Source: Bugula neritina
Taxonomy: Eukaryota > Animalia > Bryozoa
Length of the DNA stretch: 42,724 nt
Direction of reading: 5' to 3'
NCBI GenBank assembly: GCA_964035545.1
Contig: CAXIUT010000184.1
Coordinates: 1 to 42,724 of the forward strand
Part shown: positions 4,921 to 42,724 of the stretch, piece after piece
Position numbering within the stretch: position 1 is the first letter of the stretch
How the letters are laid out: each line of letters starts with the position of its first letter
Program-made: the position numbers and the translations under genes
Notes under the pieces: generated by a model
Databases searched by the model: none
Seen by the model: the letters and a program-made list of their open reading frames with translations, nothing else
What the model was told of the DNA's origin: nothing

Positions 4921-6708
4921 ATGAATCTTACAAAAATAGTAGCACTTCTAGTGTTGATCTACTGCGGAGCAACTCTAGTAGTTCACTCTATCAATAAGAG
5001 AGCTAAAACAGGATTGCCTGAACAACTTATCGCTGGATAAATCCACTACTCACGCATACCTGTCGAATATTGGGAACACAGATTACTCACCATAAAGAGC
5101 ATGGGATTCAATGCCCTGTCAGTGTATATTATGTGGAATTACCACTAAACAGAAAAAGGAGTTTTCGACTACAAAACATAAAATAAAAATCTACCACTCT
5201 TTCTAGAACTAGCAAAAAAACATGACTTCTATGTCCTCATTAGACCAGGACCATATGTATGCGCATAGTGGGATTTCGGAGGCATGCCCGCAAGACTACT
5301 TAACGTCCCAGGACTAACTATCAGATCCAACAATGAAGTCTTTCTCGGCGAAGTCCTGCTCTATTTTAGATCTCTAGCACCTATTCTCAAGCCAAATCTA
5401 GAAAGCAATGGAGGTCCAATAGTTTTACTCCAAATATAGAACTAATATGGTTTTTATGGGAAGGATAAAAGTTATATTGAAGCTATCAGATAGATGTGGC
5501 ACTTAATTGACATAAAAACTAATTAATACTATGTTGATATTATAGAAAATATCTAGAAATGCCATTGGTCAGGAGCAAATATCGGCATTAACGATGGTAA
5601 AACAGAATAACAATATATCTTGGCAAGAAAGATGTAGCCTAATGGAATGATACTCGGAGGATAGATCTATAGTGGATGGCTTACCCATTGGGGATAATAA
5701 TTCCAAGGCAAAAATATGACACAGTATATGAAGTAGTTCTAGTTTTTATTCAAATATAATCACTCTTTTTCTATGTATATGGTTCATGGAGGCAGCAATT
5801 TTGGACTAACAGCAGGCGCCAACTCAAAAGAATCAGATAAAAAGGAAGGAGACTACGAAGCAGACATCACATCCTATGACTACGACGCGCCAATCAACTA
5901 ACAGGGATCTCCTACATAAAAATTTGATAACTTTAGAACAATGGCACAAAACTATGTAAACTGGACAATACCAGACCCACCAGCACCAATCCCAGTAATA
6001 TCAATTCAAGCATTCAAACCGTACAAAATTGCATCACTCTTCGGCAACCTCCCACAGCCAACTCTGACCAAATCAGCTCTATACCCATTCGAATCAAACC
6101 AACTTCAAATGTACAACCAAGGATTCGTTGTTTATTAAACTATTCTTAAAGCACATAAATACTAACTCACAATGGAAGTCCATGATTTTGCCATTGTGTA
6201 TATGGACAGTCATTTTGTTGGATCATTCGATCGCTCTAAGTCAGTGCTGCATCGCTTCGAGGCCAATTGCAAAAAGTAATGCAAATTGTATATTTTGGTG
6301 TAGGCTATGGGACACATCAACTTCGATCACTAAATGGAAAAAGACTACAAAGGACTGATTTCTTTCAAAGATACAAGAGGTGATAAATTTCTATGGGATA
6401 TCTATAAAATAAACGCAGATAATAAAATACTAACCTGGAGGTCTCTTAGCGATAAAAGCTACCCTTCACTGAATAGAGCCTCTTTTAGCATCTCTCAAGT
6501 AGGAGATACCTTCATCAATATCAAAAATTACAAAAAAGGATACCTATGGGTCAATGGACATCTTCTAGGCAGATATTGGAACATTGGACCAACCGAAAGA
6601 ATCTTCTGTCCAGGAGTATGGCTCAAATAAGGACCAAACGATCTCTTCATCCTCGATTTGCTCACAGATTAAAACGCATAAATAACAGGTGATAAAATTC
6701 TAAGGTGA
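4921..6708 (+). CDS. Beta-galactosidase, glycoside hydrolase family 35, with signal peptide, 595 aa
   Basis: GEIHYSR, MGFNALSVYIMWNYHE, RPGPYVCAEWDFGG, QIENEYG, EIYSGWLTHWGE, YMVHGGSNFG, TSYDYDAPINEQG, LVEAMGHINF, KGYLWVNGHLLGRYW; uninterrupted frame. Confidence 0.96.
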
Positions 6709-18156: not shown

Positions 18157-18220
18157 GGGGGTTGGGGTTGGGGTTGGGGTTGGGGTTGGGGTTGGGGTTG
18201 GGGTTGGGGTTGGGGTTGGG
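18157..18220 (+). repeat. Internal (GGGGTT)n telomeric tract, 64 nt
   Basis: G4T2 run 68 nt after the RB-related stop; ends TTGGG. Confidence 0.95.
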
Positions 18221-18462: not shown

Positions 18463-21400
18463 ATGAACAATCGATCCTTTCTACACGAATCATTGGACAC
18501 CCTCAGCACTCAAATCTGCAAAGAAGGTCTCTGTCCACGTCCACAACTCTTTATAGCCATCTGGGAAGCCACACGTAAAGTCATCATCACCAACTCGCAA
18601 CATTCTAAACCCACTTTGCTCGCAAACTCCTTCCTTAGCTGGCTCTAACGCTCATCAGGCGAATGCTGGCTCAATTTTTAACCGACCTAGACAACATTGA
18701 AGGAATGCGGCATCAGTGGCAGAGTACATATATGACTATATAGTGCGTAGATGCAAAGAAATGGGAAGGAATAGGAACAATTAAAGACACCAACCTGTAC
18801 AACCATTTAAACAGCAACTAAAAAATATATTTTAAAAGTGATAGAGAACTACTTCTAAGATGTTTCTATCTACTGATAATCAAAATAAAAGAGCTACTAA
18901 AAGAACACAAAAACATGTAGATCTGTTTAGACAATTTGGGAACAATCAGAGTCAAATAAAGAAGTTATTCTTTTGACCCATTTGTTGTAAGCTAGCAATC
19001 AATGAATCCTAACTTCAGATACAAAAGATTACACTTAAAATAAAATCATAGTTAGAGAAGTGAAGATTCTAAAACTATATAGAGACATATTGACCAAATA
19101 AACTAGCAATCATCACCTTGTGAAATAAAGAAACGTCCTTATTTCCATCAACTCATAGTCTCTAACCAGCCTCCAACAACTAAGATATCAAACGATCTTC
19201 TAGGTGCAGGAATTGACCCATTGACTTACAACATAAAATACTCAAAACTAGCTAATAATAGTTCAAATCTATTGAATCAATAATTTATCAAACCTTAACA
19301 CAACTAGAATAGACATCCTTGTGTAATTGACAAGTTTTCAAGAACTAAAGGAACCCAGTTGACTGGTATCAAAGTTGGTAACTCTATTGTTGTTAGAATC
19401 GGGAGTAATTATAGTCCAGCTCTGAAGAATTATTATTTAGATGTGGGAAGTAAGAATATACAATGGGTTGGTTCATAATCTAAGATTAAACTTGATCATA
19501 GCAAACAAAGATGTGTGTTGCCTGCTAACTAGACAGAAGAGTATGCCTTTGTTACTAAAAAATGTACCAAACAACACCTTTAAAGCAGAGTTTAGCTGAG
19601 AAGATAGTTATATAGAAGGTATTGCTAGTACTACTAAAAGTATATTCCTAGTGATTGCGTTGCACCTTTAAACAAAGATTCAGTCGAAAAGATTATCAAA
19701 CAAGTGAAAGAGTTGGTTAAGAAGATAGGCAGGAAGTAAGGATCCCCTTTAATCAATAACTTGATAAATTAGGCCAATAAGGAATATTATTTGGCTTACA
19801 AGAAAGCTGTTTTAGATTATATATTGAAAGACAAAGAAGAGACTGTGAGGACAGGAATCAATGTATCGTTTAAGAGTGTTGCTGAGTGGGGTAGACCAGT
19901 TACAAAAGCATCAACAAAAGCATACCACTTAACCAATCTAAAAGAGTCTAAACGGAGGCTATAGCTAAACCACATTCTTTTTCCCGAGTGTTTAAACAAG
20001 ATATATTTGTAGAATGAGAAAATAAATTTGATAGAATTATTCAAGAAGAGAAAAGATGGAGAATATCGACCATTTAACATCCTTTACTACATAAAACGCA
20101 ATACGAATCAACTGAGTGAAGGCTACAACATGCTATGCTAATCTTGGGCAAAGAGAATTGCTGAGATAATAGAAGAGCATGTCAATATCAAGCAGGAATC
20201 ATACCAAAAGTTGAAACAGTTTTTCAATTCTATCCATATCATCATGTCAAATAAGCTCAAAGAACTGGTTTATAATACTATTGGTAGTATCTTATGTGAG
20301 TTTTCTTGCGAGAAGGGATCGATGAGGCAAACAAGAAATTTACTACTGATTAATATGACTGAAAATGGACAGAGTATAGGATTTATCGATGACGTATAAA
20401 AAGTATTTAAGCACTAGTTGTTGGAAATGATTGATAAAATAGTTGATATCACTAGAAAGGTGCCAAGAGTATAAAACTACTTAAAACTAAGTAATGACAT
20501 GTTTGTTTGGGGAATAGACTAGAACGATAGTTTTATTATTGATACTAAAAATACACTAAGAACTGTTTTTTAAGACAACTATCGCAAAATAAATGAGTTG
20601 AAAAAATAATTAATGAGTTTATAACAGATATTTACACTGATTGATAGGATAGTGGTGTGGTGTAGATAGAAGTTCACAGTCCAGGAGTTGCATGGAATAT
20701 TTTCTCAGATAGCTGAATACTAACAAAAGATATAAGAAGTTAAATGTTACTACATGTCGGATATGGTAGTAATCGATTGTATTTAACTAAAAAGAAAGTT
20801 ATCTAGTCATTTAAAATCACTGAAAAAGATGATATTCGATACAGTAGACGACCGCTTAAAACAGCGTAATGTAAACGTTTCTAACAGGATGAGTAAAAGT
20901 ATTCAGCTGATTTGCAAAAGCATATCAACAACTAGTTAATTTGTGGAGTTATATCGTGACATAGAGATAACCAAGCAGAGTGAGCTACCTTTGGTCTGTA
21001 CATAGATAGACTAGAATGCTAAAGATATCATGTTCATGTTCGGTGTCGATGGATTCAATGCTAATTTGGAGTTAATGAGATCGAGCTACATCAGCAGACA
21101 TTCTTATGTGGAACTGACTCAGCAAATATAAAAGAATTAGAAACGACTTTATGAGTAAAGGTTGGATTTGTAGAAGAAGCTAAGATAGAAAATAAATCGA
21201 TTCCAATCTGACACATTGTCTAGTTTGAAGGAAATCAATGCCAAGATAGACAACTTCGATATGCGCAAACTATACTCTTAGTACTTGTAGATACTGACAG
21301 TGTTTAAGCAGAAAGTGTAGCAGAACAAGCAGACTCAAAAAGAATTGAATAGTCAATAGTAGGACCTGAAGTGGCCAGCAACTGTATTTCCACATGCAAA

Positions 21401-24400
21401 AGAACTGCAGTTGATAGTCTAGCCTAACTACCAGCTGTGGTAGTTGGTTGCTTAGTATGATGCTTGCATGAAGGAGTGGAAGTACATCGAGTTGAGTCAT
21501 TTCGATGTGGAAGGTGCTGAGGGGAAGATGTAGAAGATGGATCAGAGAGTGACTAAAATTATAGTTCAGTTGAAAAACTTTGTAGGATTAAAAATTATCT
21601 ATGATTTGCAAAGTGATATAAAGGAGTTTTTAGGACAACAAGTGTCCATCATTAAAATATTCAGCAATCCTGGACTCAAAGATAGACATTGGAATTTATT
21701 TAACAAACGACTACCACTATCAGGATACGACTTGAAAGAGTTATCATATGGAAGGATAAGGTTACTATATGAGTACTAGAAGAATTTGAAGGTGTTGATG
21801 TCGATATCAAATCAGGCAGCAAAATAGTTCTAAATATAAAATGAAAAACAGTAAATGTTTTAGTATTGGAATCGCCTTCAATTTCATCTCTATCAGGCCA
21901 GTGATTAAAATATGTTGTTTATCGATCAAAGTTTTCTTGATTAACAAATACAACTAATTGACCATCATCTTACCAAAACTGTTATTCTTAAAAATTCACC
22001 CTTTTCCAAAGCATGGGGTTGGGGTTGGGGTTGGGGTTGGGGTTGGGGTTGGGATGGTAAGAAAGTGTTGATCGGATTCAGATCATCACAGTAGAAGTTT
22101 GTTGTAGTTCGAGGGATATTCAAGATGGACTAAATCAATAAATTACTACCAATCGAATCGACTTAGTATGATTCTATTTAGAATATATGGAAAAGTGTGA
22201 TAAAGAAGATACTAGACCAGCCAAAGGTAACATAGTTTTTTAAGAGTCAAAAAATGCCATAAATAATATAATAAATAGGCAAAAAAGCAGACTTCATTAA
22301 AAGTTCATTCAATAGCTACCTCACCTTGAAATGTATGTAATTTACACGTCTATACTTCCTCCCTTAAACAACTATTCTTCATCTAATATCTCTTCTATCT
22401 ACATAAAAAATAAACAAAGCTCTTCAACTGATAGCCTGGACTTGCTTTACTGGCATTCAATCATGCTATCGTGATGGCAATTCCCATTTGGTGTTGAAAA
22501 GTGCATGTGATCACTTGTAAGTTAGATGTGATGCTTTGCATTCTAAGAAAGGGAAGTCTAAGTTTTTCTAGGAGTTAGTTGTTTTGGAGAAAAATGTAAG
22601 ATAAAATATAAAAAATTAGATAGAAGAATAACTAAATAAGAATTTTAGAATATAAGTGTTGATAAATATACGTTGACAGCCCTTTGTGCTGGAATTGAAG
22701 TTTAGTTTTCAAAGATGATAAAAGAAAAATAAACTAAATAATCAATCAAGGCAAAATATTAAAAATAAAGAGGACTATTTGATTGAAAAAATATCATCTT
22801 AGCCATCTCTAAAACTAGAATTTCTTCTCTCTAAAATTATATCTAAATTATCTCAAATAGCAACAGTATAAAACCTTAGTCAACTACCTCTACTTAACTA
22901 TAACGATAATAATCTCAAACTATCTTTCTTTTCTCAAACAATCAACTACCATTATTAGTATATTGGTGACTAGACAACTTTATCTCTTCCTGTTTGTTCT
23001 GATAGATTGATATGGCAGTTGGCTGTTTCTATTGGCCAGCATTGCGCAATGACTTCACCAAGACATGAAGGTGTGAGAGAGGTAGCACTGTTTACAGGTC
23101 AGAATTGGATCTAACTCAATGATCCCAAAACATGTCTTGATACTAACTTGCAATCCTGTTTGATGGAATGGTGACTACCAACTACTGGATCCACTTCAAT
23201 ACTTAGTTTGTTCAGCTGACGAGTCAAATGATAGCCAAATTGACTCAGCTGTATAATATGAAGAAACAAAAAATATAATAAAATAGTTCTACTTTATCTA
23301 TCCGCAATAACTAGTTGATGATAAATGGCTAGACAATGGTATTTTTGAGTTTATCATAAAATAGAGTGAAATAAATGCCTGATGGAGTGCTGACTTGCAT
23401 GAGAACTGTAAGCATTGTAAAACCATCTCTTTAAATGATGCGATAATAGATGTAAAAATATGATAGAATAAGAGGAATTAAGCAATATCTACATCTTTTG
23501 AAAGGTAGTTGTGATAAAGTTGATATTAGTAGTATATTGAATAACATTTAGAATAAAAAGTAATGGTAGTAGATAGTTAGTATTGTTAAGAAATCTATTT
23601 GGAAATAACTAGATAAAGACAACCAGTGTAAATTCATATCTCTTTTTTATGTAAAATTCATAGCATAAATAATAGATATAACCTTCAGATATTGATCACT
23701 ATCTCAATCTTAAAAGAAAATAAATATAAAATGGTTTATAATGGAGTGATATTGTTCTTGTAGTAGGCTAGCAAAGTGGCAAATCAAAAGTAATTGAACA
23801 AGTAATGAGAGATAGTAATCTATTTGGTTCAAACAAAGGAATCAATTTGAGTTTTATCTAATAAGGCATCTCAGAAATGAACTATCTTGACTACATCTGG
23901 AAAGCAAGGTAAAGATCAATCAGCTAGGAATAGTAAGTCAACATCTACATTGACTCAGATATCTCTCAAGAACAACTTAATGCTGTTAAAACCTTCAAAC
24001 ATAACCACATGCTATCATCTTAAAGAACAATGCCAATTAAAATAGTTATCTAGACCCATTCTGTTGCAAATCTTGATCCTAGCAGTTTGATTTAGACCTG
24101 TGTGGTTTTCTTAAAACAAAATAGCAATCAACCAAACAGAATATACAGATCTTGGGTCGGCCAGTTGAATATTACAGAATAAGACAAGTTGGTAGTCTAC
24201 TAGCTAGAACATTCTTTCGTTAGTATGCTGAACTTTGTTATGAAAATGTAGAAAAAACCATTTAATGATAGCAAGTTGATGCTGGCTAAAAGGTTTTTCG
24301 GGTTCTTTTAGATATTTTTGAGCAATCTCAATGGAAAAGAAGCAGATAGAATGTGCTAGCTATAAAAATAAAGTTACATATTTAACTGCTTTGTCTATTG

Positions 24401-27400
24401 CTTGTTTTGGGGACTAGGTATGTGCAGTCTACGAGGAATTCAAACATAAACCCTAAAAAACACATCAATGATGTCTTTGCATAGAAATTAGATCTGCCAG
24501 GATAGCTCAATGAACTCTACTTAACTGAAGACAACGAATGGGTGTATTGGGACTCGTTAAAGTAGGATTTTCAAAATAACAAATAATCTATTCCTTTTTA
24601 CCAGATTTGGGTGCCAACTGCTAACAACACTAAATTGCTGACTTTGATGGTAAAACTAATCTAACAAAATAAACTCTTTGATAGTATACGGCACTCAAAG
24701 TGGAAAATCAACTCTCCTCAACTAGATATCATGTTTCTAGTTGACCTATAACAGCTTTTTAGTTGACTGCCATAGCTATACTAGTACTTATCATTTAGCA
24801 GCACTAACTCGAGGGAAAGCTCTCTTTGGTGAGAATAGTAAAAATTTAATACTTGTCGATGACTTGCATCTCCCCAGCACTGAAGTATGTGGAGTACTGA
24901 GGACATTTATCTAAAGAGGATATTGTCCAAATTCTTCATCTACTGGCAAACTAAATGAATACGTGAATCAGTTATCAATAATAGCTACTTGGAAAGGTGG
25001 CAGTGGATAAGACAATAGATGTTTTTGGAGGTTGCTAGGTCGTTCTATTCCAATCCATCTTTAAAAAATTCTAATAAAAATAAATATAATTCATCTTCAA
25101 GACCTACCTAACTTGTCTTTTCTAATCTAAATAATCAACCATCTAGACCTTCAAAATGTAAACAATGATAGTCAATTTTTGTCTACACACCATGAAGGTG
25201 TTTCCTGCAATAGCTGCCAAACACATAAGGATGTTAATATAAAGTTTATGTCAGGTAGATATAGGCAAAGGATAGAAACATTTGCTTGAGCATTTACTAG
25301 TATAGAGTGAATCTATTATCTCTGAGGTAGTTGTCAATCAGTAAAACACATATTTCAGACATATGAGTCACTACTTTAGTAAATTTTTATCAATCCAACT
25401 CAAAAACCAACTATAACTAAAACTAATATCCAACAACTACGTCTACGACATCAAATAAGTATAATAAGACAAAAAAAACAACCATATAGTCGACCACCTA
25501 ATGGATGCAAAAAACTATTACAAAAAGTAATGCACAACTATATATATCTGATGCTCATGTTCGCATTTTATAGAAACTTATTTGGTCGTTAAAAAAATAA
25601 TAACGGGCATGTGATGTTGGTAGGCAAAAATGGTCTAGGTTGTGGTACGCTAGGAAGAATGGCAAGTAGTTGATAGATATTGAGATAAATGATATTAAAA
25701 ATATGTCTGTAAGTGGGTTGCTAGAGTAAGTAGTGAAGGTTTTGAAGACTGGAGGGAAAGTTGATTAATGTGTCAATATCATCAACCATTAAATAGTTTA
25801 AAATCAACCAGATTTAATCAAATTAGTTCATTCTTATTGTTTTCACCTTAGTTCCATTAATGTTTTGGGACAAATCCTTATGGAACAAATCATCAATCCT
25901 TCAATTCTTAAAAGAAATTTTTGAAAAAGAATGTCAAGAAATCATAACTAATCAAAAAAATAAGATAAAAGTTTAATAGCATCTATCACTTCTGCATCTG
26001 TCTATCAAGACAATCATATACCAAACTTATCAAAGACTATCCCAAATTTATAGCAATTAGAGTTATTGAAGTTAATGATTGGCCTCTTGAAGCTGTATCT
26101 GTAGTTAGTAACGATTTATAGCATAAAAAACCTGATTAAATGTTTCAAGTCATTACTAAAGTTTAAGAAGAATTAAGGTCTTTAGAGGTATATGGTAGAT
26201 CTCAAACTACTTCACCTTTAAATGTAATGAAATTATACTAAAAAGTAATGAAAATTCTTCAAGCCAAGACTAATTGTAATGATAATAGCTAAATGTGGTC
26301 TAAAAGAATTAAATTGAACAAGTAAAAAGTAGATAATTTGGAAAGTTAAAAGAAATATATGAAAGTCAGCATCATCAATACTTCTAAACTCTTAAAGGAC
26401 TGAATGAGTCAATATCTGAAGCGAATTGTTAATGCTAAAAGAAGAAAGAGAATAGAGATCAACTATAAATAGATTTAGCTCAAGCCAAAGAGCAATGCAG
26501 GTGTTTGAAATAACAATTCTAGAAATCAGATAGTGCCTTGAAATAAGAATATAGAGTATTCATATAGAACAACAGACAGGACATAATCTAATAGGCTCGA
26601 TCTTATCTCAACAGTCAGGAGTTTATTGACTTGACAACTGCTTATGAATATCCTGTATAAACAGCCAATTCACAGGTAATAGAGCTCATACATCAATTTT
26701 AAACTGATTATTTCAACAAAATACCTAATGAATGCTCTCATTTAGGCATTCTAAGTTAGCTAGTAGAAAAATTTAAAGGAAGAATGCAAGAACAATTTAA
26801 AGCTCAAGAGTAGCTTAGTTCTAAACTATGCCATTATTCAAGCATAGAGGACAAGATGCAGGAATACCGTGAGGGCATTTGTGATCTTGAAGACAAAATG
26901 AGTGATTTAAAGGAATAAGAAACAGCTTTAAAGTAATCAAGAGCTCCCTCAATGAAAGGTTATGATGATATTGTCAAAAAAATAACCCAATATGAATCAG
27001 TGACCAATATTCTATTGAAGTACTAATATGTTCTTAAATCTCAAAACGATTCCATCTATCAGCTACCTACTACTCTTAGTGGAACTGCTATCTTAATGAC
27101 ATACATCCTGGCTTATGCTCCTTTGCTTCAATAAAAATAATTAGATCATTTTTGTGAGAAAGTTGTTACCAAGTTGAAAGAAATAAAGGTGGAGGTGTCT
27201 TTGGATGGAGTTTAAAGCATTTTTGGTTGCAGGGTAACAATTGAAGTTGACTTATAAGTATTTATCTGGGATCGAATAATGGATAAATTCGCTTATTTTT
27301 GGATCTGTAGGTCATAGTATAGTCGTAGTTGGAGAGATAGAGAGAGTAGCTACATGGGTTAATAGAAATTATGAAGGTAAAAGTGGAATATGGGTTGAAA

Positions 27401-28649
27401 CTATTCAATAAATCAGATAGTTTATCCAAAAAGACCAAGTAATCTATATTAATAATGCTGATTACGAACTAGTGGCAAAGATATCTTCTTATTGAACCAA
27501 AATATTGGAATAAATAGTAGTGTTAGAGGTTTAAAAGTTGATGATGAGTAGATAAGTATCCATGAAGGTTGCAAAATAGTATTTGTTTACTAAGCTTTGT
27601 AAAAAGTGCAAGTTCAGTAATAGAAAGTGGGTTATTTATTTTGAAAGTGTTTAATAGATAGAGAAGAGGAATAAAGATGATGCTTGAAGAAAGATTGATG
27701 AAAAAGGGAGAAGTTGGGAGAAGAAGTGAGTTAATGCAATCAGTATTCAAAGAAAGGGAGTAGATGGTGACAATAGATGAGAAAATGCATTCGATTATTA
27801 GCAAGATGAGGAAGGAAAATGTAGTTAGTGAGATTATATTTAAGAAGATTTAAGAAGAAGGTGAACATAAGATAGCTACTAGCAAGAGAATGGAAGGATA
27901 TAAAGAAGAATTAATGAAAATAGGCACATATTTGTAGAACTATGAGAGTTTTGTTGATGAGATATAGTTGGTTTATAAAGAAATAAAAAAGGATGTGAGT
28001 ATAAATCGTTTTTATCTGTTTTGGGAATGTTCTTTTAACTACTTTAGAGCATTTAATAAGTACCTGTTGAAATAAAGAACTTTTTCTAGACTATTTTAGG
28101 TCAAAAAGAGTGTATTAATAAAAATAACTTGAAAATGTATGATAAAATAATAGCAGAACTAATGGTTAAATAAAAGATGATGTTAGTCGTCCCTGATTTA
28201 TCTGTCGGATTGAACTACCTTAAAAGATATGTGAATCTAATTGCCACTAAACATCTTCAATTTCATCAAATTATGCTGTTAACGAGTTGACTGATAATTT
28301 GAATTTATCTACACTTGGTATTGAGGAGTAGACAGATTCTTTGCTTGCTTTATTTGAAGGTCACTAGCAGAAAATAAAGAAATCCAAGTTGGGAGTTATT
28401 ACTCTGTAATTTATAGACATTCCTGCTTCTCTTAAAACTGTTTTTACTATTATGAAAATAAAGAACCCATATGTATTGTTTGGCTATGAATCGTAAATGA
28501 ATCATAAGTTGCTGTGTTTGGATAGACAGATGAGTTTATATGAATTTAGAACCAACTATGAAGCAGTATTAGGCAGTATTAAATCAGATGGGGATGTGAC
28601 AATTGAAAAGCAGTTGAAAGAATGGTGTAATTTCTATATTGATTATTGA
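18463..28649 (+). CDS. Highly divergent inner-arm (DNAH3/7/12-type) dynein heavy chain-like protein with degenerate motor; possibly a pseudogene
   Basis: Tail: VAPL..., YKKAVLDYILKD, VPRVE, PNYQLW, NPGLKDRHW, IDHHLTKT..NSPF. Linker: FTRLYFL, CFTGI. Collinear but eroded AAA motifs: YEYIG, EMPDGV..MRTV, VVGEQSGKS, GTQSGKST, VDDLHLP, HVMLVGKNG.G, DWPLEAV. Intron 18724-18743, telomeric tract 22015-22053, several apparent indels; end approximate. Confidence 0.78.
18724..18743 (+). other. 20-nt intron
   Basis: gtacatatatgactatatag; removes an in-frame TGA and leads into a long open frame. Confidence 0.75.
22015..22053 (+). repeat. Internal (GGGGTT)n telomeric tract, 39 nt, inside the dynein-like ORF
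   Basis: Perfect G4T2 run ending TTGGG; in frame, reads (WG)6W. Confidence 0.95.
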
Positions 28650-28798
28650 TATCATATAAATATCTTCAATTAACCATTATATCAATCTATATTAAGTCAT
28701 TATTTAAAATATTTAAATCAATATTGTTTTAATACTTGTTGGTGAATATGATAGATGAGATAAAAAGGGGTATAAGTTATTAATAAAATTAACATTAT

Positions 28799-29674: not shown

Positions 29675-29742
29675 GGGGTTGGGGTTGGGTTGGGGTTGGG
29701 GTTGGGGTTGGGGTTGGGGTTGGGGTTGGGGTTGGGGTTGGG
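29675..29742 (+). repeat. Internal (GGGGTT)n telomeric tract, 68 nt
   Basis: G4T2 run with one G3 unit; ends TTGGG. Confidence 0.95.
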
Positions 29743-29934: not shown

Positions 29935-30003
29935 GGGGTTGGGGTTGGGGTTGGGGTTGGGGTTGGGGTTGGGGTTGGGGTTGGGGTTGGGTCTGGGGTT
30001 GGG
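29935..30003 (+). repeat. Internal (GGGGTT)n telomeric tract, 69 nt
   Basis: G4T2 run with one imperfect unit; ends TTGGG; abuts the dynein reading frame. Confidence 0.95.
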
Positions 30004-33000
30004 ATCAGTCAATAAAAATACTCTTGCTCATCGTCTCTTCGATACTCCTTCTCTCAGAGGACAATCCCAACGAAGACCACGCATCTTCTCCAATGAAACC
30101 AATCAATCAAAACTCACTCCTACGATAGTCAAAGAATATCAGACCAAAAAACAAGCAGAACAGCTTCCTCCCATCGAGGCCTACCCCAAAAAAGGTCGAA
30201 TGATGACGTAGGAGTCCGAAGTATAATACCTTTAAAACTAAAGAATCACCACTATAAGAAAAAACTGGGCCTAAAATAACTAAAAAAACCCATCACTTTA
30301 CCAGGCAAAAGTCAAACAAAATTTTACCAAAGCAAGTACTTAATATTTAACTAAGGAGCTATTTAGTCGAGAATGAATAGAACCATAACTGAATCAAAAC
30401 ATGTAATAAATTTGATGGATAGAATGAAGGGACAATTCGCTGCTGATAGACAAAGCAGATTATAGAATTAGTCTCCTCAGCTGGATCAAAAATAAAGCAG
30501 AGTTTCATAAAAAGATTTGAAGTAGAAGATGAGAAGAGCAATTGATCAAAAGGGATCGATAAATATGTAGAATTCAAAGGAAATAGATTTATTTATTTTT
30601 ATGGCAGAAGATGGTAAAATACCTGATTACTAATTCTACTACATGGTCAAATAAGAAAGCAATGACTACTATAACATGGATATCGTTACCTATCAAACAG
30701 TAACAAAGAAAAAGTTGAATTAGTATTATACTTTATCAGGACATGGAGTTACCAAATACGAGGAATCGAGGCCTGTAGAATTTATAAATTTGACTGAATG
30801 GGATAAATAAAGAAGACAATTTAATTAATTAAAAGAACTACTGTTTTTCAAGAAATTTAGAAAATGGAAAACACTCAAAAAATGGATAACCATTCTTTCA
30901 AGACAAAAAATCAAACGCATCAGAGACGTTCTCTCATAAAATCTATTCATTCTTCACAACTAGTATAGAAGCATGCTCCTAGCACACCATAACATATGCT
31001 ACGATATCTAGCAATTCAAATGTCTATACATACCAACTGAAGCTCTGACCATCGATAACTTCAAAAAATAACAATAAAAAAAGAAAAACTCTCTGATCTA
31101 CAGTCTAAAGCAATGCTCAAGATAAATGCATCGACACACCACGGAAGGACTAAAGATAGTTGTCGAGGAACTGAAGAGTCAAGTGCTTGGAGGATAAGAT
31201 TTCGATCAAGATTAGGAAGAGAAAGATGTAGTAATGGACTAAAAAATATAAGCGTTTGTCTAATTAGGTTTTTCAAGTTCTATTTCATTTGGACATAGAA
31301 GTACAATCAGAACATAGTTTATGAAGTTTCTAAGATTAGCATATCTACTTGATTTTGTCGCTGTTGACTCGCTTGGTAAAATGGTCATGACCAGTCTGCA
31401 AAACTTTATGGACATGCTCTATGGAGGTCGGTTATAGGGAGGAGACAATCGGAGGTACATCTTATAGAATTAACACAAACAAGAATAAATTGATTTAGAT
31501 CTACCTAGTGGTCTAGAAATAGGAACAACTACCAATCCTTAAGGTAAAAATATATTCCAGTAAAATAATGCTAACTATCGACCTATTTTACAACTAGAAG
31601 TTAGTTATAACTAAGACGTTGATCTTTCTTTTCAAAATAATAAAGTTACATTTGACAAAGTCGATGATTCTTTCTTCTGCTTTGATCTTGAAGGATTTGT
31701 TATTATCTAGTAAACTAAAACCTTTATCTATGATTCTGATACCATTCTTTCTTATAGAACTGCTTAAAATGCACCAGGACAAATACTAAAAATAGTTCCT
31801 ACTTAAAAAGACATCATATCTTCATTGATATAATGCGTCACATAGACCCTTGACGCTCTTCAAATTGTATAAAAATGGGCAAAAAATGATTAGTTTACTC
31901 AATATGTACGAGCTCTTGAAGAATGGGACTAAATTATAGGATAATCTTGGGATTCTAATGACGAAAGATACCTTACTATAGTTGGCTGGCTCAGATAGCA
32001 ATCTAAATTTAGAGGATACAAAGGGTATATTCGTTCAAGTGTAGGTCGTACTTTCGAAACAGTGCAGACATTTATCAATCAGCATGCTGATCTACTTTCA
32101 TACTTTTAAAGAAACAAGAGAAGTTAGTTATAAATACTTACAGACAATCGAGTTCAAGACCAGATAACTGTCTTTTAAACAGTCCATGATAAATTCAATC
32201 ATTCAGAAGAATACATGCAGACTTATCTACTAGAAAGAGCAGATATTTATATCTTTGCTGTTGAGATGAACCATATGAGAAGCAAGTTGTTGCAAGATCA
32301 AGGAAAAATTCTTAAAAATTTAAGTATAATCTACATGAAAATGGTCAAATAACGAGGAATTGATTTGAGATCATGGTTAACAACTTCAGTTCAAGAGCTT
32401 ACTGGTCTAATTATCAGGATAGAATAGTTTGTAGTACTAAAAAATAATTTTGATAGGATAGGTCGAACAATAAGTGATAAAAAGGATCAAATATCAACTA
32501 TGGCAAGAGTGATATTTTTATTATAAGGAGGCAAGCATTCAAGTATGCTAACAAAATAAGATAAAGATATTGTGACTGATCTTAATACTTTGGCTTCTAA
32601 TCTTGGACAAACTTTAAATGATGTATAAAATCAGATGCCTAAATATGTCTAGCGTTTCAAAAAAGAGATAAAAGGAACGTTATAAAGGTTTTAAAAAGAA
32701 TCATAGGAATTGAAAGATACCATTGGTCAAGATCTGTTCAATAAAAACACAAATGTTATAAACTAAGCTGCATTGAAATTAAACTAGCTATAAACCAAAC
32801 TACTTTCACTCGAATAATATACTAGAAAACATAGACAGTATGAAGAAGTTCTAGATTTTACTGATTACACCAACTTCAAAGACTTCAGATAACTCAAAAC
32901 GGGCTTTATCTTAAGACAAAAAATATTCAATGGAATCATCGATCTCTAAAAGCATAGCAAGGAATGGAACGAGTGGAAAGTCATGCAGATATAAGTCAAA

Positions 33001-36000
33001 TAGTTATCAACAGTTTGCGATAAATATATGAAAGATCTTCTTTCAGCAGAAAGAGGAGTATCTTAGAACCAAGCTCTTCCAGTTTTCAAAAAGAAGCTCT
33101 TCATTTTTAAAGACGCAATTCCAGTGATAACATCAATTCGATGCCCATACCTCTAAGACACAGATTTCAAGACCCTATAGCATCTATTAAGAACGGACAT
33201 ATCACTAAAATAGAATGAATAGTTAACTTTATAGCAATTTTTAGGATTACCTTTCCAAGAAGCGCAAGAGGAGATAATGAACGTGGCAACAACTGCAACT
33301 CAATGTTACTATTTACGTCAAGATTTAGACAAATTTTAATCAGAATGGATGAGTCAATAGATAAAGTTAAAACAATTCAAATAAACAAGCGATATCATCA
33401 TTCTTTATTAAGTAGAATAACTGACAGCTAAATTAGATTAATCTATGGCGATAGTCAGTAATTTACTATCAAATAGATATATTACACATTTGAGGGAAAG
33501 AGCTGATAAGTTAAATAATTAAATATTGTTGGCTCAATAAATTATTTAAAAATTGGTTTAATCTCAAAGAAAATGGGTCTATTTATAAAATATCTTTGCT
33601 GCACAAGATATCAAAAAACAACTGATGGTTTAGGCAGGATATTTTACTCAAGCCGATAAGTTTTTAAAAGGATTGACTAAAAAATCAATAGCAAGACCTC
33701 TCTTAACCAGACTGATTAAAAATACTAATTTACAAGAACTGACTAAAAATTTATAACTTCTATAATAGATATAAAAAAAATTATAAGACTATCTATAAGT
33801 CAAAAGAAGACTCTTCTCAAGGTTCTACTTTATCTCCAATGACTAACTAGTATAAATATTGGCTAACTCCAACAACATGCAAGTCATCCAAAAACATATC
33901 AATAAACTATATGAAGGAGTTAGCCAGTTGTACATATAAAAAGATACGCCGTCTACGATTGATGGCTTGATGAGTCCAGAGGAAGAGGTTATCAAGTTGG
34001 TAAATGGAGTTAGCACAAGGTTCAATATTTAGATGTGGCTGGGAACTCTTCAGAAATAGATGGTAGAGAGTATGAAGCGGACAGTTCGCGATGGAAATAA
34101 AGATTTTGTTAATGCTGTTCAAAAAACAAGAGTACAATGGATTCTCAACCATAAAAGTCAAGCTGTGATGACAGATAATCAAATTATCTGGACTAATTAG
34201 TCACAATAAGCCATCAAATAACAAGCATTTCGGAGAGATTCTCTCAGTTCATGGTATTAACTCTTAGTTAAGCAACTCAGCCAGCTAACAGAACTGATAA
34301 GAACTGATCTAAAACCCCTATACCACAAAATAGCTGTTTCTCTTATCACTGCCGACGTCCACAATCGAGACATAATTCTAAATCTAATCAACCAAGATAT
34401 CTAATCCATCTATGACTTCCCATGGCAACAACAACTCAGATACTATATTGAAGATAGCTAGATGTGCATAGTTAGACAAGTTACATCCACGATGGACTAT
34501 GGATACTAATATCTAGGAGCAACTACTCGGCTAGTCATCACGCCTCTCACTGATAAATGCTGGATCACTATTACATCTGCTGTTGCTAACCAACTCGGAG
34601 CATCTCCTGCTGGACCAGCTGGGACAGGAAAAACATAATCAACAAAAGATCTGGCTAAAGGATTGGCAAGGGTCTGTATTGTTTTCAACTGTTCAGATCA
34701 AATAACTGCTCAAATGATGAGTAAATTATTTTCTGGTTTGGCCCAGCAAGGAGCCTGGACCTGTCTCGATGAGTTTAATAGAATAGATATTGAGGTTTTA
34801 TCAGTTATCGCACAACAGCTCTTTTCAATAAGAGTAGGTCTTAAGAAATAGAAAGGATAGGTGTAGATTTAAGGTAAAACACTACCAATAAAAAAGAATT
34901 TTGGAGTATTTATAACAATGAACCCAGGATATGCTGGTCGCACATAACTACCAGATAACTTAAAATCACTATTTAGACCAGTATCGATGATGATTCCAGA
35001 TTATGCAATGATAGCATAGATAATGTTATATGCTGAAGGCTTTCAAAACGCCAATGAACTATCTCGTAAAATGATTCAACTCTACAAATTAGCCTCAGAG
35101 CAATTATCTCAACAAAAACACTATGATTTCGGATTGAGAGCAGTTAAATCATTACTGGTGATGGCAGGCGAGTTAAAAAGATCAGATTCCAAGAGTAGTT
35201 AAGAAGTGGTACTAATTAAAGCTATGAAAGAATCAAATATACCTAAATTTTTACAAAACGACATCTATTTGTTTTAAGCTCTAGTATCAGACTTATTTCC
35301 CAGCATAGCCATCTAAGAAACAGTCAACTAAAAGCTATAAACAGTTACTCACGAAGTAATCTCTTAAATGAAGCTAGGGAACATAAAAAATGTAACAACT
35401 AAAGTATTGCAATTGCATGAAGTAGTAAACATTCGATTTGGATTAATGTTGGTTGGAGAAGCAGCTGTTGGCAAAACAACCATTTATCGTATCTTGAAAA
35501 AAGCTATGAATAAAATACTTGACCTCAATCCAGATGCAGGCAAAAGATATACAAGAGTAGAGGAGAAAGTTGTCAACCCGAAATCAGTTACAATGGGATA
35601 ACTCTACGGCTAAGTCGATCTTCTCTCACAGGAATGGACCGATGGCTTACTATCATCTATCATGAGATAGTGCAATAACGACTAAAACAAAGGAAATTAC
35701 TGGATTACACTCGATGGACCTGTTGATGCCCTTTGGATATAAAATCTTAATACAGTCCTCGATGACAACATGATTCTCTGTCTAGCTAATGGAGAAAGAA
35801 TCAAATTAAGACATCAACTTAGAATGCTTTTTGAAGTGTAAAATCTATAAGCAGCATCGCCAGCCACAGTCAGTCGATGCGGTATGGTCTACATTGGACC
35901 TAATGACAACTATCTATCTCTTATTGAAAAAGGAGTCTCAGAAATGGGATTATAAGAAGATCTCCAAAAACATCTCATCAACAACTGTCTAGGATGTCTG

Positions 36001-39000
36001 AAAACGCTATTATCTTTAAAGAAGAAATGGGTGTAGCCAATGCCAACAATACATCTCCAGGTAGCTTAATGCCTTATATTGCTCATTAAAGCCATTTTAT
36101 CAAGAACAAAGCCTAGTAACAGTTATGAATAAAATGTAAAGAGGTTGAACGTTATCAGCGCATGGTCGCTTATCTGGTCAGTAGGCTCTTCTCTTCAAAA
36201 CGTATCATATGGATAGTTATAAGCTGCTTTAAGAGCGAACATGCAAAATGTTTTTCTACCTAAAACATAAACCCTTTTTGACTTCTTTGTCAATCCTGAT
36301 AACTTTGTCTCTTTCAGTAGTTGGTAAGGTAAATTGCAATAATTCTAATTCCCTAAAGGATAATAATATCACAATATTATGGTCCCCACTATTGATACTC
36401 TCAAGTATAAATTTGTCTTTTAATTACTCCTTTAATATAAAAAACCTATCCTTATCACAGGAGATTCAGGTGTTGGTAAAACATCACTGCTTGTTCCTTT
36501 CCTCTTCAATAAAAGAGATCAAAATATAGTTACCATTTTCTTGAATTTTTCAGCTAAAACTAAATCAAAATAAACACAACTAGCCATCGAATCAAAACTC
36601 AATAAAAAAGGCAAAACACTATTCGGAGCAAGACCCAATTAAACCATTGCCATCTTTATAGATGATGTCAATATGCCATAGCTATAAAAATAAGGAGCTC
36701 AACCAACTATTGAACTTCTGAGACATTTTATTGACTATCAAGGTTTTTATGATCGATCTAAGTTGTTTTGGAAGCAAGTAGTCGATACAACGATGATTGG
36801 TTGTGGAGCTACTCCCAGCGGTGGAAGAAATAAACTTAATTCTAGATATCTTAGGCATCATATGGTCATCTGTCTACCTGAACCTTCAGATTCTAACCTT
36901 AAAAAGATATTTAATTCTATATTTAAAGGATTCTTACAAGTTTGGAACTTTTCAGAAGTAGTTAAGAAGTTATCATAAGGTCTAGTTCATGCTACTTTAG
37001 ATTTTTACAAAACTATCAGGAAAGAACTCTTACCAATACCTAGTAAATTCCATTATTTGTTCAATCTGAGAGATATTAGTCGTGTTTTCCAAGGTATTTT
37101 GCAATGTTCTTTGGACGAAGCCAACTCAACTTAAAAAATGATAGCACTATGGTCACATGAATTACAACGAGTTTTTGGTGATAGACTCAACAACATAGAG
37201 GACAGAACTTGGTTTTATAACTATAGTTCTCAAGTAAGCAAAAGATATACTGAAGGAATAGATAGTTAAAAAATAAAAGGACTACATTTTACCAAATTAT
37301 TATCCTTCTAAACTGAATAACCTACTTATGAGTACGTCTAGGATCTCAAAAAGATAATATAGTATCTTGAAAGTAAGATGTATGAATATAATCTTGAAAG
37401 TTCTGGTAAACTAGAGTTGGTTTTCTTCAAATAAACAGTCTAGCACATACTAAAAATATTTAGAGTACTCAGTCAACCACGTGGAAATGCTATGTTGATA
37501 GGAGTGGGCGGCAGTGGCAAACAATCTCTATCTAAACTAAGTTCTTTCATAGCTAAATGCCAAATATCTCAATTATAGTTTGGTAAAAACTATGGCATTG
37601 ATGCTTTCAAGACTGATCTTCAAAAGATATCTTTGCTAGCTGGAGCAGATTAGAAACCTTTGTGTTTTCTTTTTATTGACACTCAAATTTTGTATTAATA
37701 GTTTTTAGAAAGTATCAACAACTTGTTGAATACAGGATAAGTTCCTAATTTATTCAAAAAGAAAGAAGAAATCGATGATATCATGAACAGAGTTAGATCT
37801 AGTGCATTAAAACAAAAAAAAGTTGATAGTCCTGAATCTCTCTGGTCTTTCTTCATCGCTAATATCCGAGCTAATCTTCATATTGTCCTATGTATGAGTC
37901 CAGCTGGTGATTCTCTAAGAATAAGAGCAAGAAAGTTTCCTTCTCTAATAGATTGCTGCACAATAAACTGGTTTGATAGCTGGAGTGAAGAAGCACTGGT
38001 GTCTGTAGCTCAGAAATCACTGACATAAATGGACTTACCTGAAGGTAAAGGATAACATTTTGTACGTCTATGTACAAAAGCAAATATCGATAACTATGAA
38101 TTGGCTTATAAATATTTAGCAAATGAGAGAAGAAAAGTATAATCAACACCAAAAACATTTTTGGATCAACTTCTTCTGTTCAAAAATATTTTACAACTGA
38201 AAAATAAAGAAATTTAGCATAATAAAAAGATACTTACTGAAGGAATATAGAAATTATACTCAACAAACGATATAGTATCAAAATTAAAGATCTAAATGAC
38301 TAAAATGCAACCGAAATTATAAGAACAAGCTATAAAGACATAATAATTTTTAAAAAGACTAGCTATTTAAAGATAAGATGCCAATGTTGTTGAACAAGAA
38401 GTGCTAGCATAAACATTATAAGCTAACTAACAAACAGTATAGATCAAAATCATCAAAGACGATGCACAAGCTGAATTAAGTAAAGCTATGCCTATGCTTA
38501 TTGAGGCAGAATAAGCTCTTAAAAAAATAAACAAAGGTGATATCTCAGAAATCAAAGGATACGCCAATCCACATCCTATCGTCTTGATGGTACTGTAGGC
38601 TGTTTGTGCTCTTCTAGGTTAGAAGAATGATTGGACTAGTATTAAGCTCGTCATGATGGATCTTAACTTCCTTGATAGACTTAAAAGTTATGATAGAAAT
38701 AATATCAATGATAAAACGCTTTTTAATTTGAGAAAATATACAACTAAACAAGAATTCGATCCATCAATAGTTGGTCAAAAAAATTTAGCATCTAAAAGTT
38801 TATGCATGTGGTGTAGAGCTATTGACAATTATGCAAAAATAGCAAAATAAGTTTAGCCTAAGAAAAGAAAATTAAATTAGCTATAAAAAGTATTTGATGA
38901 GAAAAATAAGATACTATTTATGAAGCAAAAACAGTTATAGAAGGTGAAATAGAAGGTAGCTAAACTTCAGAAAGAATGTCAATAGACACTAGATTTAAAG

Positions 39001-42000
39001 AATCAATTACAAAGTGATTTAGACTTAACAATAAAAAGATTATAAAGAGCATAAAAATTAACAAGTCTTCTCAAAGATGAAGGACTAAGATGGAGTACTT
39101 TAATCGATGGATTCAAGTCACTTATCATATAAACTCCAGGATAAGCCTATCTCGCATCTATATACCTATCATATCTTGGTCCTTATACTGGATAATATCG
39201 GCAATAAATCATCTCCAATATTACAGAATAGATGAAAAATAGTGGTGTTTTCTATCCTAATAACTTCAGTCTGACTAATACTTTGTACGATCAGATCACT
39301 GTGAGAGATTGGATTCTTGAAGGACTTCCCAATGACCCTACATCTATTGAAAACGCTATTATAGCCAAAAAAGGTATAAGGTATCCTTTGATGATTGATC
39401 CACAATTTCAAGCCAACAAATGGCTTAAAGTCAATGAAACAGACAATAAACTGTCTATTATCAGCTTTAGTAATCCTAATTATTTAAAAGTGTTAGAGAT
39501 GGCTGTTAATTCAGGTTATCCAGTTCTTATCTAAGATGTTGAATAAAATTTATAAAGCGCAATAGATAGTTTACTTGAGAAGAAAGTACAGGTGATAGAC
39601 GGTTTGAAAATGACTTTACTTGGAGATAAAAAGGTAGTTATTGATTAAAGATTTTATCTTTATATGACTACTAGATTAGCTAATCCTAAATTTTTAGCAT
39701 AAATATATAACAAATCAACAGTTATTAACTTCAGCATTACCTTTAATGGCCTAAAAGATCAACTGCTTAGTGATGTATGCAAACGCTAAAAACCTGAGAC
39801 TGAGTAGCAAAGAGATGAAATCATTGTGAAGGTAGCAGCCAATAAGAAGTTTTTGAAGTTAACTCAAGACAAGATATTAAAGATGTTGGCATAAAGTAAA
39901 GGAATGGTCTTAGATGACATATAGTTGATAACAACTTTATAAGAATCAAAGATAAAATCAAAAGAAGTATAAAAGTCATTATAGCAAAATTCAATAATCT
40001 AGTAATAGATAAATATCGCTCGTAGTTTATTTGTACCAACAGCTATTCGAGGAACTATCCTTTACTTCGTTATATCTAAACTATGTCTGATATAATCGAT
40101 GTATTAATTTTCACTAGAATATGTAAAAAAATTGTATCTGACTGGTCTAGAAAGAGCATAGTTCAATGCCATGATTTAACTTAAAATAAGACGACTTAAT
40201 TAAAGTATTACCAAAATTATGTTTACTAGTGTATCTAGGTCTCTTTTTGAAGTTCATAAAAAATTGTATGCCTTTTTGATATGTACTGCCATCAAAAAAT
40301 AAGCTAAAAATATCTCTGAGAAGGAATGGAATCTTTTTTCAAGAGGGGCAGGCATCAAACCTAAAGTTTTCAAGTAGGTTTTGCCTTGTCCAGCAACAGT
40401 TACTCCTGATAATTGGTATTTGATGCATAAGTTAACAGAATTAAAAGGGTTATAAAATTTGATGGGCGATATGAGAGGTGGATTTTAGAATTATAAAACC
40501 TTCTTCAGATAAGATAATCTCTTTACTAATCCTTTTCCTGGTAAAGATGTGGTGGTAATAAATAATTTCCATCTACTTTTGATGTCTAGAGCTATCAGTC
40601 CATAAAAATTAACTTTCCATATGTCGAGCTATGTGCAAAAATAATTAGGCAAATACTATGACTAGTCTCATGTTGTTTCTATTTAGTAAGTTCTATCTGG
40701 TTGCACGTTCAGTGTTCCAGTTCTTTTTGTCCTTTCTACAGGAGTAGATCCGACTAATAATATACTTAACTATTGTATGAGCAAAGGAATTAATTTGGAG
40801 ACTATTTCTCTTGGTCAAGGACAAGGGAAAAAAGCACAAAATCTGATTTAAAGGTCACAAAATGATGGAACATGGGTCTTACTTAACAATTGTCATCTTT
40901 CTAAAAGTTGGCTAGGATAACTCTAAAGAATCATCAGCAGCTTTTCAGAAGATACCATCCCTAATAAGTCATTTAGACTTCTTCTTAGTAGCATGCCTGT
41001 CAGCTATTTCCCATCAAATATTCTACAAAATGCTGATAAGATAACTCTATAGCCTCCTCGAGGAGTAAAGCCAAATATATCTTTATCTTTTAAATAGCTA
41101 AATGAAGATGTATTACAAGCATGTCCAAATAGAAAGAAATAGTGGTTGTAGTGTCTTTATAGTTTGACTTTCTTCCATGCTTTGATTCAGTAAAGAAGAA
41201 AATACGGTCCTTTAGGTTTCAATGTTAGATACGATTTTAACAACTCAGATCTATAGATGTCTTTAAACACTCTTAAAAACTTTTTAAATGATGGTAGATA
41301 AGATATCAACTGGGATGCTATCTGGTACATGATTGGAAATATCAACTATGGCGGAAGAGTCACAGATGATCTGGATAGAATCTGTCTGATGAGCACTTTG
41401 AAAAAATGTCTTAATCCTTAATTAATTACAACTGCTGCAGGATAAAAATACTACTACTCTGACAGTGACTTGTATTACTGTCTCAATTGCCATACTATTG
41501 AAGATTTTATGTTGACTATCGATAGAGTACTGCCGAATAATGACACTCCATAGGTCTTTGGACTTCATCCCAATGCCAACTTGACTTTTATCATCCAAGA
41601 ATCTAATAATATACTCAATTGTATTCAACTTTTACAACCTAAAGAAACTAGCTAGCAATCTGGCGGTAATAAGCTACTATAAATAATAGCGAATCTTCAA
41701 CAATTACCTTTACCTATAGATATTAGTAAAGTCCCTGCACATTTATTAGGCGATAACAGCAAAATCTTCCCCTCTATGACTAACTTCCTCTTACAATAAA
41801 TCGATAAATTCAACAATTTCCTTTCTATTATCTAGAATAGCCTTATAATGTTAGAAAAAGCTATCAAAGGAGCTATTCCAATGAATTCAGATCTGGATTA
41901 GATGGCAATTGCTCTTCAAAATAATTATTTGCCTCAAATATGGCTTAAAAAATGTTACTAAACAATGAAACCATTAGCTTCCTGGCACATTGACTTCAAA

Positions 42001-42510
42001 CTGAGAATGGCCTTTCTTAGAAAATGGTCAGAATAAACTCCAAATGCTTACTGGATCAGTTGTTTCTTCTTTCCTCAAGGATTACTGACAGCTTTCCTGC
42101 AAACCCATGCCAGAAAAAACAAAATACCAATAGATACACTCAGTTTTAAGTTCAAACTGACATAAGTCTAAAAGTAGAAGCTAATTCAGCCAAAAGAAGG
42201 AGGTTATATCTATGGAATGTTCTTTTAAGGAGCAAGATACGATACAGGACGTGATACTTTGGTGGACGAGGAGATAGGTAAACTTAACTAGCCAGCTCCT
42301 TCTATTTTACTTTTACCTTTAGAGAACCATGAAATCGGGTAGACTCAGTACAACTGTCCATGTTATAAGACAAGCAAGCGATCAGGTGTTTTGTCAACGA
42401 CTGGGCAATCGACTAATTTTATTTTGGGGATTCATTTAAATTCTAAGACAGAGAAGACAGATTACTGGACACTAAAAGGAACAGCTTTGATCTGCCAGTT
42501 GAATTATTGA
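30004..42510 (+). CDS. Axonemal inner-arm dynein heavy chain, DNAH6-like
   Basis: N-terminal [30 protein letters not shown]1: [56 protein letters not shown]2: [21 protein letters not shown]3: [11 protein letters not shown]4: GVGGSGKQS. Also [41 protein letters not shown]; TGA 42508-42510. Start codon not visible; a few indels in 30300-31300. Confidence 0.95.
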
Positions 42511-42633
42511 TTATCAATCTGTTCAATGAAATTTACTCTTTTTATCAGTAATATAATTGCAATATTGAATTAAATTATAAATTAATTGAGTATATTTTAA
42601 AGATATTCATTCATTTTGAAAGGGTTATTCTAT

Positions 42634-42724
42634 GGGGTTGGGGTTGGGGTTGGGGTTGGGGTTGGGGTTGGGGTTGGGGTTGGGGTTGGGGTTGGGTGGG
42701 GTTGGGGTTGGGGTTGGGGTTGGG
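42634..42724 (+). repeat. Right telomere, (GGGGTT)n
   Basis: About 15 G4T2 units at the window end, ending TTGGG. Confidence 0.97.

Follow-up and report, generated by a model that had tools for sequence, protein, structure and literature searches.

Contig CAXIUT010000184.1 of the Bugula neritina assembly GCA_964035545.1 (42,724 nt; this whole stretch of DNA is referred to here as the window) carries, on the forward strand from an ATG at 18463 to a TGA at 28647-28649, a gene for a ~3390-amino acid dynein heavy chain that appears to have lost its motor activity. We consider it likely that 18463-28649 encodes a motor-dead dynein heavy chain conserved across peritrich ciliates, that the gene is intact, and that the protein has a nucleotide-independent structural or regulatory role. 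Comparative sequence analysis shows an old gene of dynein descent that is intact and under selection, with no catalytic AAA1 and no site conserved as a P-loop. An earlier, sequence-only reading had described 22941-28649 as an apparently motor-dead pseudo-dynein, favoring a non-motor dynein that has been retained rather than one in recent decay, but leaving its status as a pseudogene open because of indels in the reading frame.

The window is a complete ciliate macronuclear chromosome, running telomere to telomere from CCCAAC repeats at 1-95 to TGGGGT repeats at 42633-42724. TGA is the sole stop, and TAA and TAG encode glutamate, as in the peritrich code; this assignment follows from TAA and TAG codons at invariant dynein glutamates (in GYEYLG, GTGKTE and AGRTELPDNLK) of a neighboring gene and is supported by synonymous single-nucleotide polymorphisms (SNPs) in the motor-dead gene (TAA to TAG, TAG to TAA and GAG to TAG). 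The neighboring gene was used as comparator:

30097-42507, forward strand: canonical dynein heavy chain, paralog A, with 4137 TGA-free codons and all AAA1 motifs intact

The AAA1 motifs that the sequence-only reading had attributed to an intact paralog are carried by this gene, including AGRTELPDNLK, and a sequence check found the motifs it had quoted from the motor-dead gene (HYEYIG, CAMTSPRHEG, SGKS twice and GKNGLGCG) at the positions and in the frames it gave. The difference in length that it noted was also borne out (~10.2 kb compared to ~12.4 kb).

Relatives of the motor-dead gene were found in other peritrichs. An exhaustive protein search with an 81-amino acid linker piece returned only short fragments at 51-76% identity, plus the spurious repeat proteins P0004, P0007 and P0008, and no full-length reference dyneins; the fragments are short because gene callers stopped at TAA and TAG. 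Full loci were obtained from the contigs bearing the fragments and from a metagenome scan using the fragment alignment, and the metagenomes yielded ~7 related lineages in two deep clades. In five of the lineages, the ortholog is a single TGA-free open reading frame (ORF):

L001: 2936 codons (5´ end cut)
L010: 3343 codons
L013: 3345 codons
L014: 3348 codons
L018: at least 3306 codons

Over ORFs of such length, ~65 TGA codons are expected by chance (the off-frame density in the window is ~2% per codon), and all of the ortholog ORFs place TAA and TAG at glutamate columns, as expected for the peritrich code. Identity to the window gene was 0.47-0.52 for L010, L013 and L014, 0.40 for L001 and 0.29 for L018. 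The second deep clade, at 29% identity to the window gene, consists of L018 (4860-14777), L016 and L017; this clade carries 16 inserted residues at the AAA4 loop and alone in the family has a canonical GX4GKS in AAA3.

The dynein ancestry of the family was evident from profile comparisons. Using hhalign, the family profile aligned with paralog A over 1352 columns (residues 1092-2489 to 1113-2644; probability 99.2%, E 2.6e-19) at 18% identity and, as in dynein heavy chains, collinear AAA1-AAA4 modules follow the linker. This homology was visible only by profile and hidden Markov model (HMM) methods on frame-stitched sequence, while BLAST and tblastn of paralog A against the motor-dead locus gave no significant similarity. 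The linker was detected by Pfam:

21410-22640, forward strand: linker (DHC_N2), the best conserved part along with the tail

DHC_N2 matched the stop-free piece 21534-21776 with an E value of 9e-5 and ortholog pieces with 35.6, 50 and 48.5 bits, above the cut-off of 31.9. The domain scan proposed by the sequence-only reading thus recovered the linker, whereas the stop-free motor pieces gave almost nothing besides DHC_N2 and a weak match to AAA_6 (E 0.004-0.015). The linker was 0.57-0.75 identical to that of the L001 ortholog. For one linker piece, the top PDB matches were DNAH1-type single-headed inner-arm chains; a PDB search with the first linker piece gave no match. Tail pieces gave no Pfam match, and a search of the ESM Atlas with a 208-amino acid tail piece gave no usable match. 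The tail has the length found in single-headed chains including paralog A (N-terminus to linker motif at ~amino acid 1020 compared to ~1008-1068).

The loss of nucleotide sites was most apparent in AAA1, and extended to the modules that follow:

22950-23650, forward strand: AAA1 remnant, by phmmer alignment to paralog A
22950 (frame 2): HYEYIG of AAA1
23043-23072: site of the AAA1 P-loop deletion, with CAMTSPRHEG at 23043 (frame 2)
23183-23218: region containing the AAA1 Walker B remnant IHFNTEF, with YWIHFNTEFVQL at 23183 (frame 1)
23339-23386: AAA1 sensor region, with VFLSLSENRVKEMPDG at 23339 (frame 1)
23766-23786, forward strand: AAA2 loop GEQSGKS (GX3GKS, with SGKS at 23775), one residue short of the canonical GX4GK[ST]
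24690-24710, forward strand: AAA3 loop GTQSGKS (GX3GKS, with SGKS at 24699), also one residue short
~24846-24875, forward strand: AAA3 Walker-B-like LILVDDLHLP, invariant in the six lineages of the window clade and LILVDDLNLP in L018
25623-25646, forward strand: AAA4 loop GKNGLGCG, with the lysine lost
25840-25985 (approximate owing to indels), forward strand: near-invariant 46-residue AAA4 block FSPEFHECFGQILMEQIIKSFNSEKKFLKKNVKKSELIKKIREKFN
26371-28646, forward strand: post-AAA4 part, the last ~760 of the ~840-1000 residues after AAA4, with a short coiled-coil-like stretch followed by sequence without detectable dynein similarity

When the stitched translation was compared with paralog A using phmmer, residues 1140-1597 aligned with residues 1154-1643 (independent E value 2e-10), such that AMTSP--RHEG faces GPAGTGKTE and IHFNTEF faces CLDEF. 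This alignment confirms the deleted P-loop and the lost Walker B of the sequence-only reading. An ortholog piece aligned with PDB sequences has a six-residue gap exactly at GPAGTGKT, and the Walker A motif GX4GK[ST] of AAA1 is absent via a six-residue deletion in all seven lineages that cover the site. The Walker B DE is retained in L013 only, and the aspartate is lost in the window gene. We also considered a P-loop hidden in another frame at 23040-23170, which is excluded by TGAs in both other frames. For AAA2 and AAA3, the SGKS remnants pointed out previously are present, and the loops are moreover a residue too short. In the relatives, the AAA2 loop reads GxxxCKS in L010 and L013 and GAFDVKT in L018 and is lost in L001, and the AAA3 loop has GRS in L010 and L013 and GX4GKS in L018 only. 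At AAA4, there is no P-loop in any ortholog. From these alignments, no nucleotide site is canonical in the window species or invariant across the family. The 46-residue AAA4 block has a majority fraction of 0.98 among five covering lineages that are otherwise ~50% identical, and is diverged in L018.

The region after AAA4 is shortened. Canonical dynein chains have ~1500-1650 amino acids after AAA4. From the AAA4 loop to the C-terminus, the motor-dead protein has ~1008 residues compared to 1665 in paralog A, and is thus ~650 residues shorter. The family profile gave nothing significant past residue 2644 of paralog A, and stop-free pieces of this region gave no Pfam match to the stalk, the microtubule-binding domain, AAA5, AAA6 or the C-terminal domain. 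Invariant columns make up 41-56% of the tail (amino acids 150-600) and linker (900-1230), 11-37% of the ring, and 2-10% of the stalk and C-terminal part. Conservation in the family, as read from these columns, is the reverse of that in normal dyneins, with the tail and linker kept best and the post-AAA4 part least. The prior statement that the tail is much better conserved therefore holds with respect to the gene's own orthologs, but not with respect to the neighboring paralog, to which no tail similarity was detectable.

The gene model consists of two exons, the second of which is broken in the assembly:

18463-18723, forward strand: exon 1, 87 codons in frame 0, with an upstream TGA followed by the first ATG as start codon
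18724-18743, forward strand: 20-nt intron GTACATATATGACTATATAG, linking exon 1 (frame 0) to exon 2 (frame 2), with splicing predicted
18744-28649, forward strand: exon 2, ending at the TGA at 28647-28649 and interrupted in the assembly by one-base indels and one telomeric tract
22014-22053, forward strand: telomeric tract (TGGGGT)6.7, detected by Tandem Repeats Finder, substituting ~13 conserved linker codons with length and frame unchanged
22641-28221, forward strand: zone of one-base indel errors, defined by the contigs of runs X1, X2 and X3 (see below) and the frame alternation of an ortholog HMM

Exon 1 is based on ortholog 5´ flanks that match 18490-18687 by tblastx, with translations that align with L013 and L014. 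A GTA...AG intron of identical position and 20-nt length is found in L013 (4007-4026) and L014 (300-319), and its removal connects the conserved reading frames; the intron is thus shared by three peritrich lineages that are only ~50% identical in protein. The remaining ~3300 codons of the motor-dead gene have no frame-disrupting intron. An HMM built from the orthologs only matched the window collinearly in alternating frames (2, 1, 2, 1, 2, 1, 2, 0, 1, 0, 2 and so on), with 24446-24672 the frame-1 stretch and frame 0 beginning near 25066. The stitched translation along the refined frame path is TGA-free throughout and scored 4549 bits against this HMM as a single domain. At 22014-22053, all of the orthologs read LVxLLTEWExWLxN and the window reads WGWGWGWGWGWGW. 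This tract is probably the trace of shorter, telomere-capped forms of the chromosome that were merged into the consensus, which would place a telomere addition site inside the motor-dead gene.

The frame breaks in the motor region are one-base consensus errors of the assembly. Contigs from four public runs were compared over 22941-28649; three of them span it (X1 and X2, from one study, and X3, from another study with a different organism label), and these depart from the window sequence at ~2% SNPs plus one-base indels. Twelve of the 21 indels and 40 of the 139 SNPs were listed individually, and the figures per site given here rest on those. The indels are located as follows:

Listed sites (X1, X2 and X3 contigs): 25471, 25591, 25666, 25833, 25867, 25894, 26109, 26125, 27487, 27608, 28002 and 28221
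Sites deduced: near 23165, 23649, 24446, 24672, 25066, 26338-26398 and 27178-27331, and a pair near 22640 and 22770, which falls outside the stretch compared with the run contigs

Correcting the 12 listed indels reopens 400 codons at 25201-26400 and 491 codons at 27178-28650. In the X2 contigs (word depth ~50-60), the numbers of gaps per interval (2, 2, 1, 8, 0, 1, 1 and 4) are exactly the frame corrections required. No run supported the window state at 9 of the 12 listed sites, and X2 supported it at none. Every listed indel (12/12) alters the length of a base run, and the X1 contig over 26179-26398 has the correcting gap despite having no SNPs relative to the window. From the gap counts and the orthologs, we infer that the nine unlisted indels and the pair near 22640 and 22770 are errors as well. 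Tiny introns as the cause of the breaks are excluded, given that the differences in the reads are of one base and the orthologs are uninterrupted. Over 22641-28221, single-base indel errors occur about once every 250-300 bases, while the 12.4-kb ORF of the neighboring dynein and the initial 4.2 kb of the motor-dead gene are clean, indicating that local polishing quality is very uneven.

The substitutions pointed to a gene under selection. Along the corrected frame path, 29 of the 40 listed SNPs are synonymous and 11 are non-synonymous; 28% would be synonymous under the same mutation spectrum without selection (P = 6.6e-9; ratio ~0.15). When read in the two wrong frames, the same SNPs gave only 9 and 3 synonymous changes. 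From the synonymous excess, the SNPs are real alleles and purifying selection acts on the gene. In a second species, 18 synonymous and 7 non-synonymous differences separate L010 from L011 (pN/pS 0.10). We noted two haplotypes ~2% apart for the motor-dead gene (23102-26478), with X2 always showing the non-window letter at the listed SNP sites and X1 carrying both states at some. Collectively, the absence of the indels from independent contigs, the 29:11 SNPs and the intact orthologs with the same dead AAA1 uphold the earlier preference for retention as a non-motor dynein, rather than recent decay. The indels are not a property of the gene, as they are not found in the X1, X2 and X3 contigs, apart from those that some X1 contigs share with the window. 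The two outcomes that would have spoken for a different conclusion were likewise not observed: the X2 and X3 contigs cover the AAA1 P-loop site with one synonymous change listed and no P-loop restored, and neither indels in X2, X3 and most X1 contigs nor a lack of purifying selection was seen.

Some observations nevertheless weigh against an intact, functional gene. Nine small runs with the same species label, guessed to be RNA, contain almost none of the stretch's words, though no control gene was calibrated for this comparison, and run X6 gave no contig over 22941-28649. The remaining frame corrections, at the nine unlisted indels, come from gap counts and orthologs, and low-depth X1 contigs share the window state at indel sites 25833 and 27487. 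In addition, the gene would be disrupted in the sequenced strain if most macronuclear copies truly carry the telomeric tract in place of the ~13 conserved linker codons. The window copy could be a genuine pseudogene (a dead allele, or a duplicate of recent origin), with the intact X2 version being a second allele or locus. The ~2% SNPs and at least 19 indels separating the window from X2, the agreement of X1 with the window at two indel sites together with its mixture of both states at some SNPs, and the conserved codons removed by the telomeric tract are all compatible with two such copies. We regard this as very improbable, however, given that the window state is without support from any run at most listed indel sites and never found in X2, that the frame is correct in an X1 contig sharing the haplotype of the window, and that changes in base-run length are what consensus errors produce. 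Moreover, a copy of sufficient age to have acquired ~21 frameshifts should carry mostly neutral substitutions, but 72% of the listed SNPs are synonymous.

If the gene is intact, its product could still act as an ATPase or motor through a non-canonical site such as AAA3, which has the invariant Walker-B-like LILVDDLHLP and in four lineages retains SGK[ST]; the AAA1 of DNAHX binds ATP despite degenerate motifs (PMC11785096). This seems scarcely more probable than a pseudogene, since in the window clade the AAA3 loop lacks one residue and L010 and L013 have arginine for its lysine, every lineage has the AAA1 P-loop deleted, and the stalk and post-AAA4 part are the least conserved, at 2-10% invariant columns. 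The main alternative, which we consider unlikely but more plausible than the other two, is that the protein, instead of forming a fixed strut in the axoneme, is non-motile and associates with active single-headed dyneins, which it would inhibit or ferry. The conserved surfaces (tail, linker and one AAA4 block) would suit protein-protein contacts, and there is an analogy with the "phi template" role proposed for DNAHX (PMC11785096), though the peritrich family is shortened, without DNAHX-like insertions and without a recognizable C-terminal ring half. For the motor-dead chain that we favor, the protein would be unable to run an ATP-driven linker swing or the dynein power-stroke cycle. Selection on the tail, linker and one AAA4 surface favors a nucleotide-independent structural or regulatory element, for which the conserved tail and linker could dock where those of an inner-arm dynein would, be it on a dynein partner or in the axoneme, leaving the degenerate ring as a passive body. 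The labels "axonemal" and "structural, brake or scaffold" given to the gene in the sequence-only reading are ones that we infer in the same way.

Non-motile or orphan dynein heavy chains have only just been recognized, in animals, as DNAHX (PMC11785096, 2025) and DNHD1 (PMC8754002); these are the closest known cases and the ones that the peritrich family most resembles. DNAHX, like the peritrich chain, is a dynein paralog under selection with degenerate AAA1 catalytic motifs that is interpreted as non-motile; its microtubule-binding region is compromised. It differs in deriving from the outer-arm alpha chain, in having many insertions and in keeping an AAA1 Walker A and B, at which it binds ATP. 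In contrast, chains of the peritrich family are shortened, with a tail of inner-arm length and a deleted P-loop, and AAA5, AAA6 and a C-terminal domain were not detectable in them. A member of the DNAHX subfamily would be expected to group with the outer-arm alpha-derived XP_041462850 and to carry the characteristic insertions; the short tail and the reduced overall length speak against such membership, and DNAHX was reported absent from protists (PMC11785096). DNHD1, the "ghost" dynein, is also a highly diverged chain with a poorly conserved AAA1, and for a long time was suspected of being in decay before it was found to be required for cilia (PMC8754002; PMC11785096). By its description, DNHD1 is longer than canonical chains and has lost Walker B residues rather than the P-loop. 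Orphan heavy chains whose tail can be related to a known class and whose motor has diverged beyond classification are described in the main text of Kollmar 2016 (PMC5100056), and this combination of a conserved tail with an extremely divergent motor is shared by the peritrich family, for which nucleotide-site loss and truncation after AAA4 are additionally seen across ~7 lineages. Searched by terms, that main text mentions no such peritrich family. Paralog A is collinear with the motor-dead gene from the linker to AAA4 but keeps every catalytic motif, has ~650 more residues after AAA4 and is only 18% identical. Text searches of literature with incomplete coverage, which are no proof of novelty, turned up no description of a comparable family in ciliates or other protists.

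A broader possibility, which we put forward tentatively, is that peritrichs possess a long-established class of dynein-derived pseudo-ATPases that evolved independently, lost every nucleotide site as well as AAA5, AAA6 and the C-terminal ring half and was kept for its tail and linker. If so, this would be the first non-motile dynein family in protists and perhaps a dynein body without a closed six-module ring. A second, independent and more radical case beside that of animals would make the conversion of motor to scaffold a recurrent route in dynein evolution, and the family would offer natural sequence variation for asking which dynein parts matter after the loss of motility. As a practical lesson, the assembly has stretches of dense one-base errors and telomeric tracts that overwrite coding sequence, such that apparent pseudogenes need to be checked against reads.

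Elsewhere in the window, four internal (GGGGTT)n tracts with the polarity of the right-hand telomere were found, including the one inside the motor-dead gene:

18158-18220: internal telomeric tract
22014-22053: internal telomeric tract
29675-29742: internal telomeric tract
29935-30003: internal telomeric tract

These tracts resemble telomere-capped shorter chromosome forms incorporated into the consensus. Between 1 and 18 kb, several long TGA-free stretches switch frame, for which indel errors or small introns are possible. This part of the chromosome contains, on the forward strand, a protein kinase gene at 1144-1422 (Pfam Pkinase, E 6.5e-18) and a beta-galactosidase gene at 6334-6627 (BetaGal_gal-bd, E 9.5e-17).

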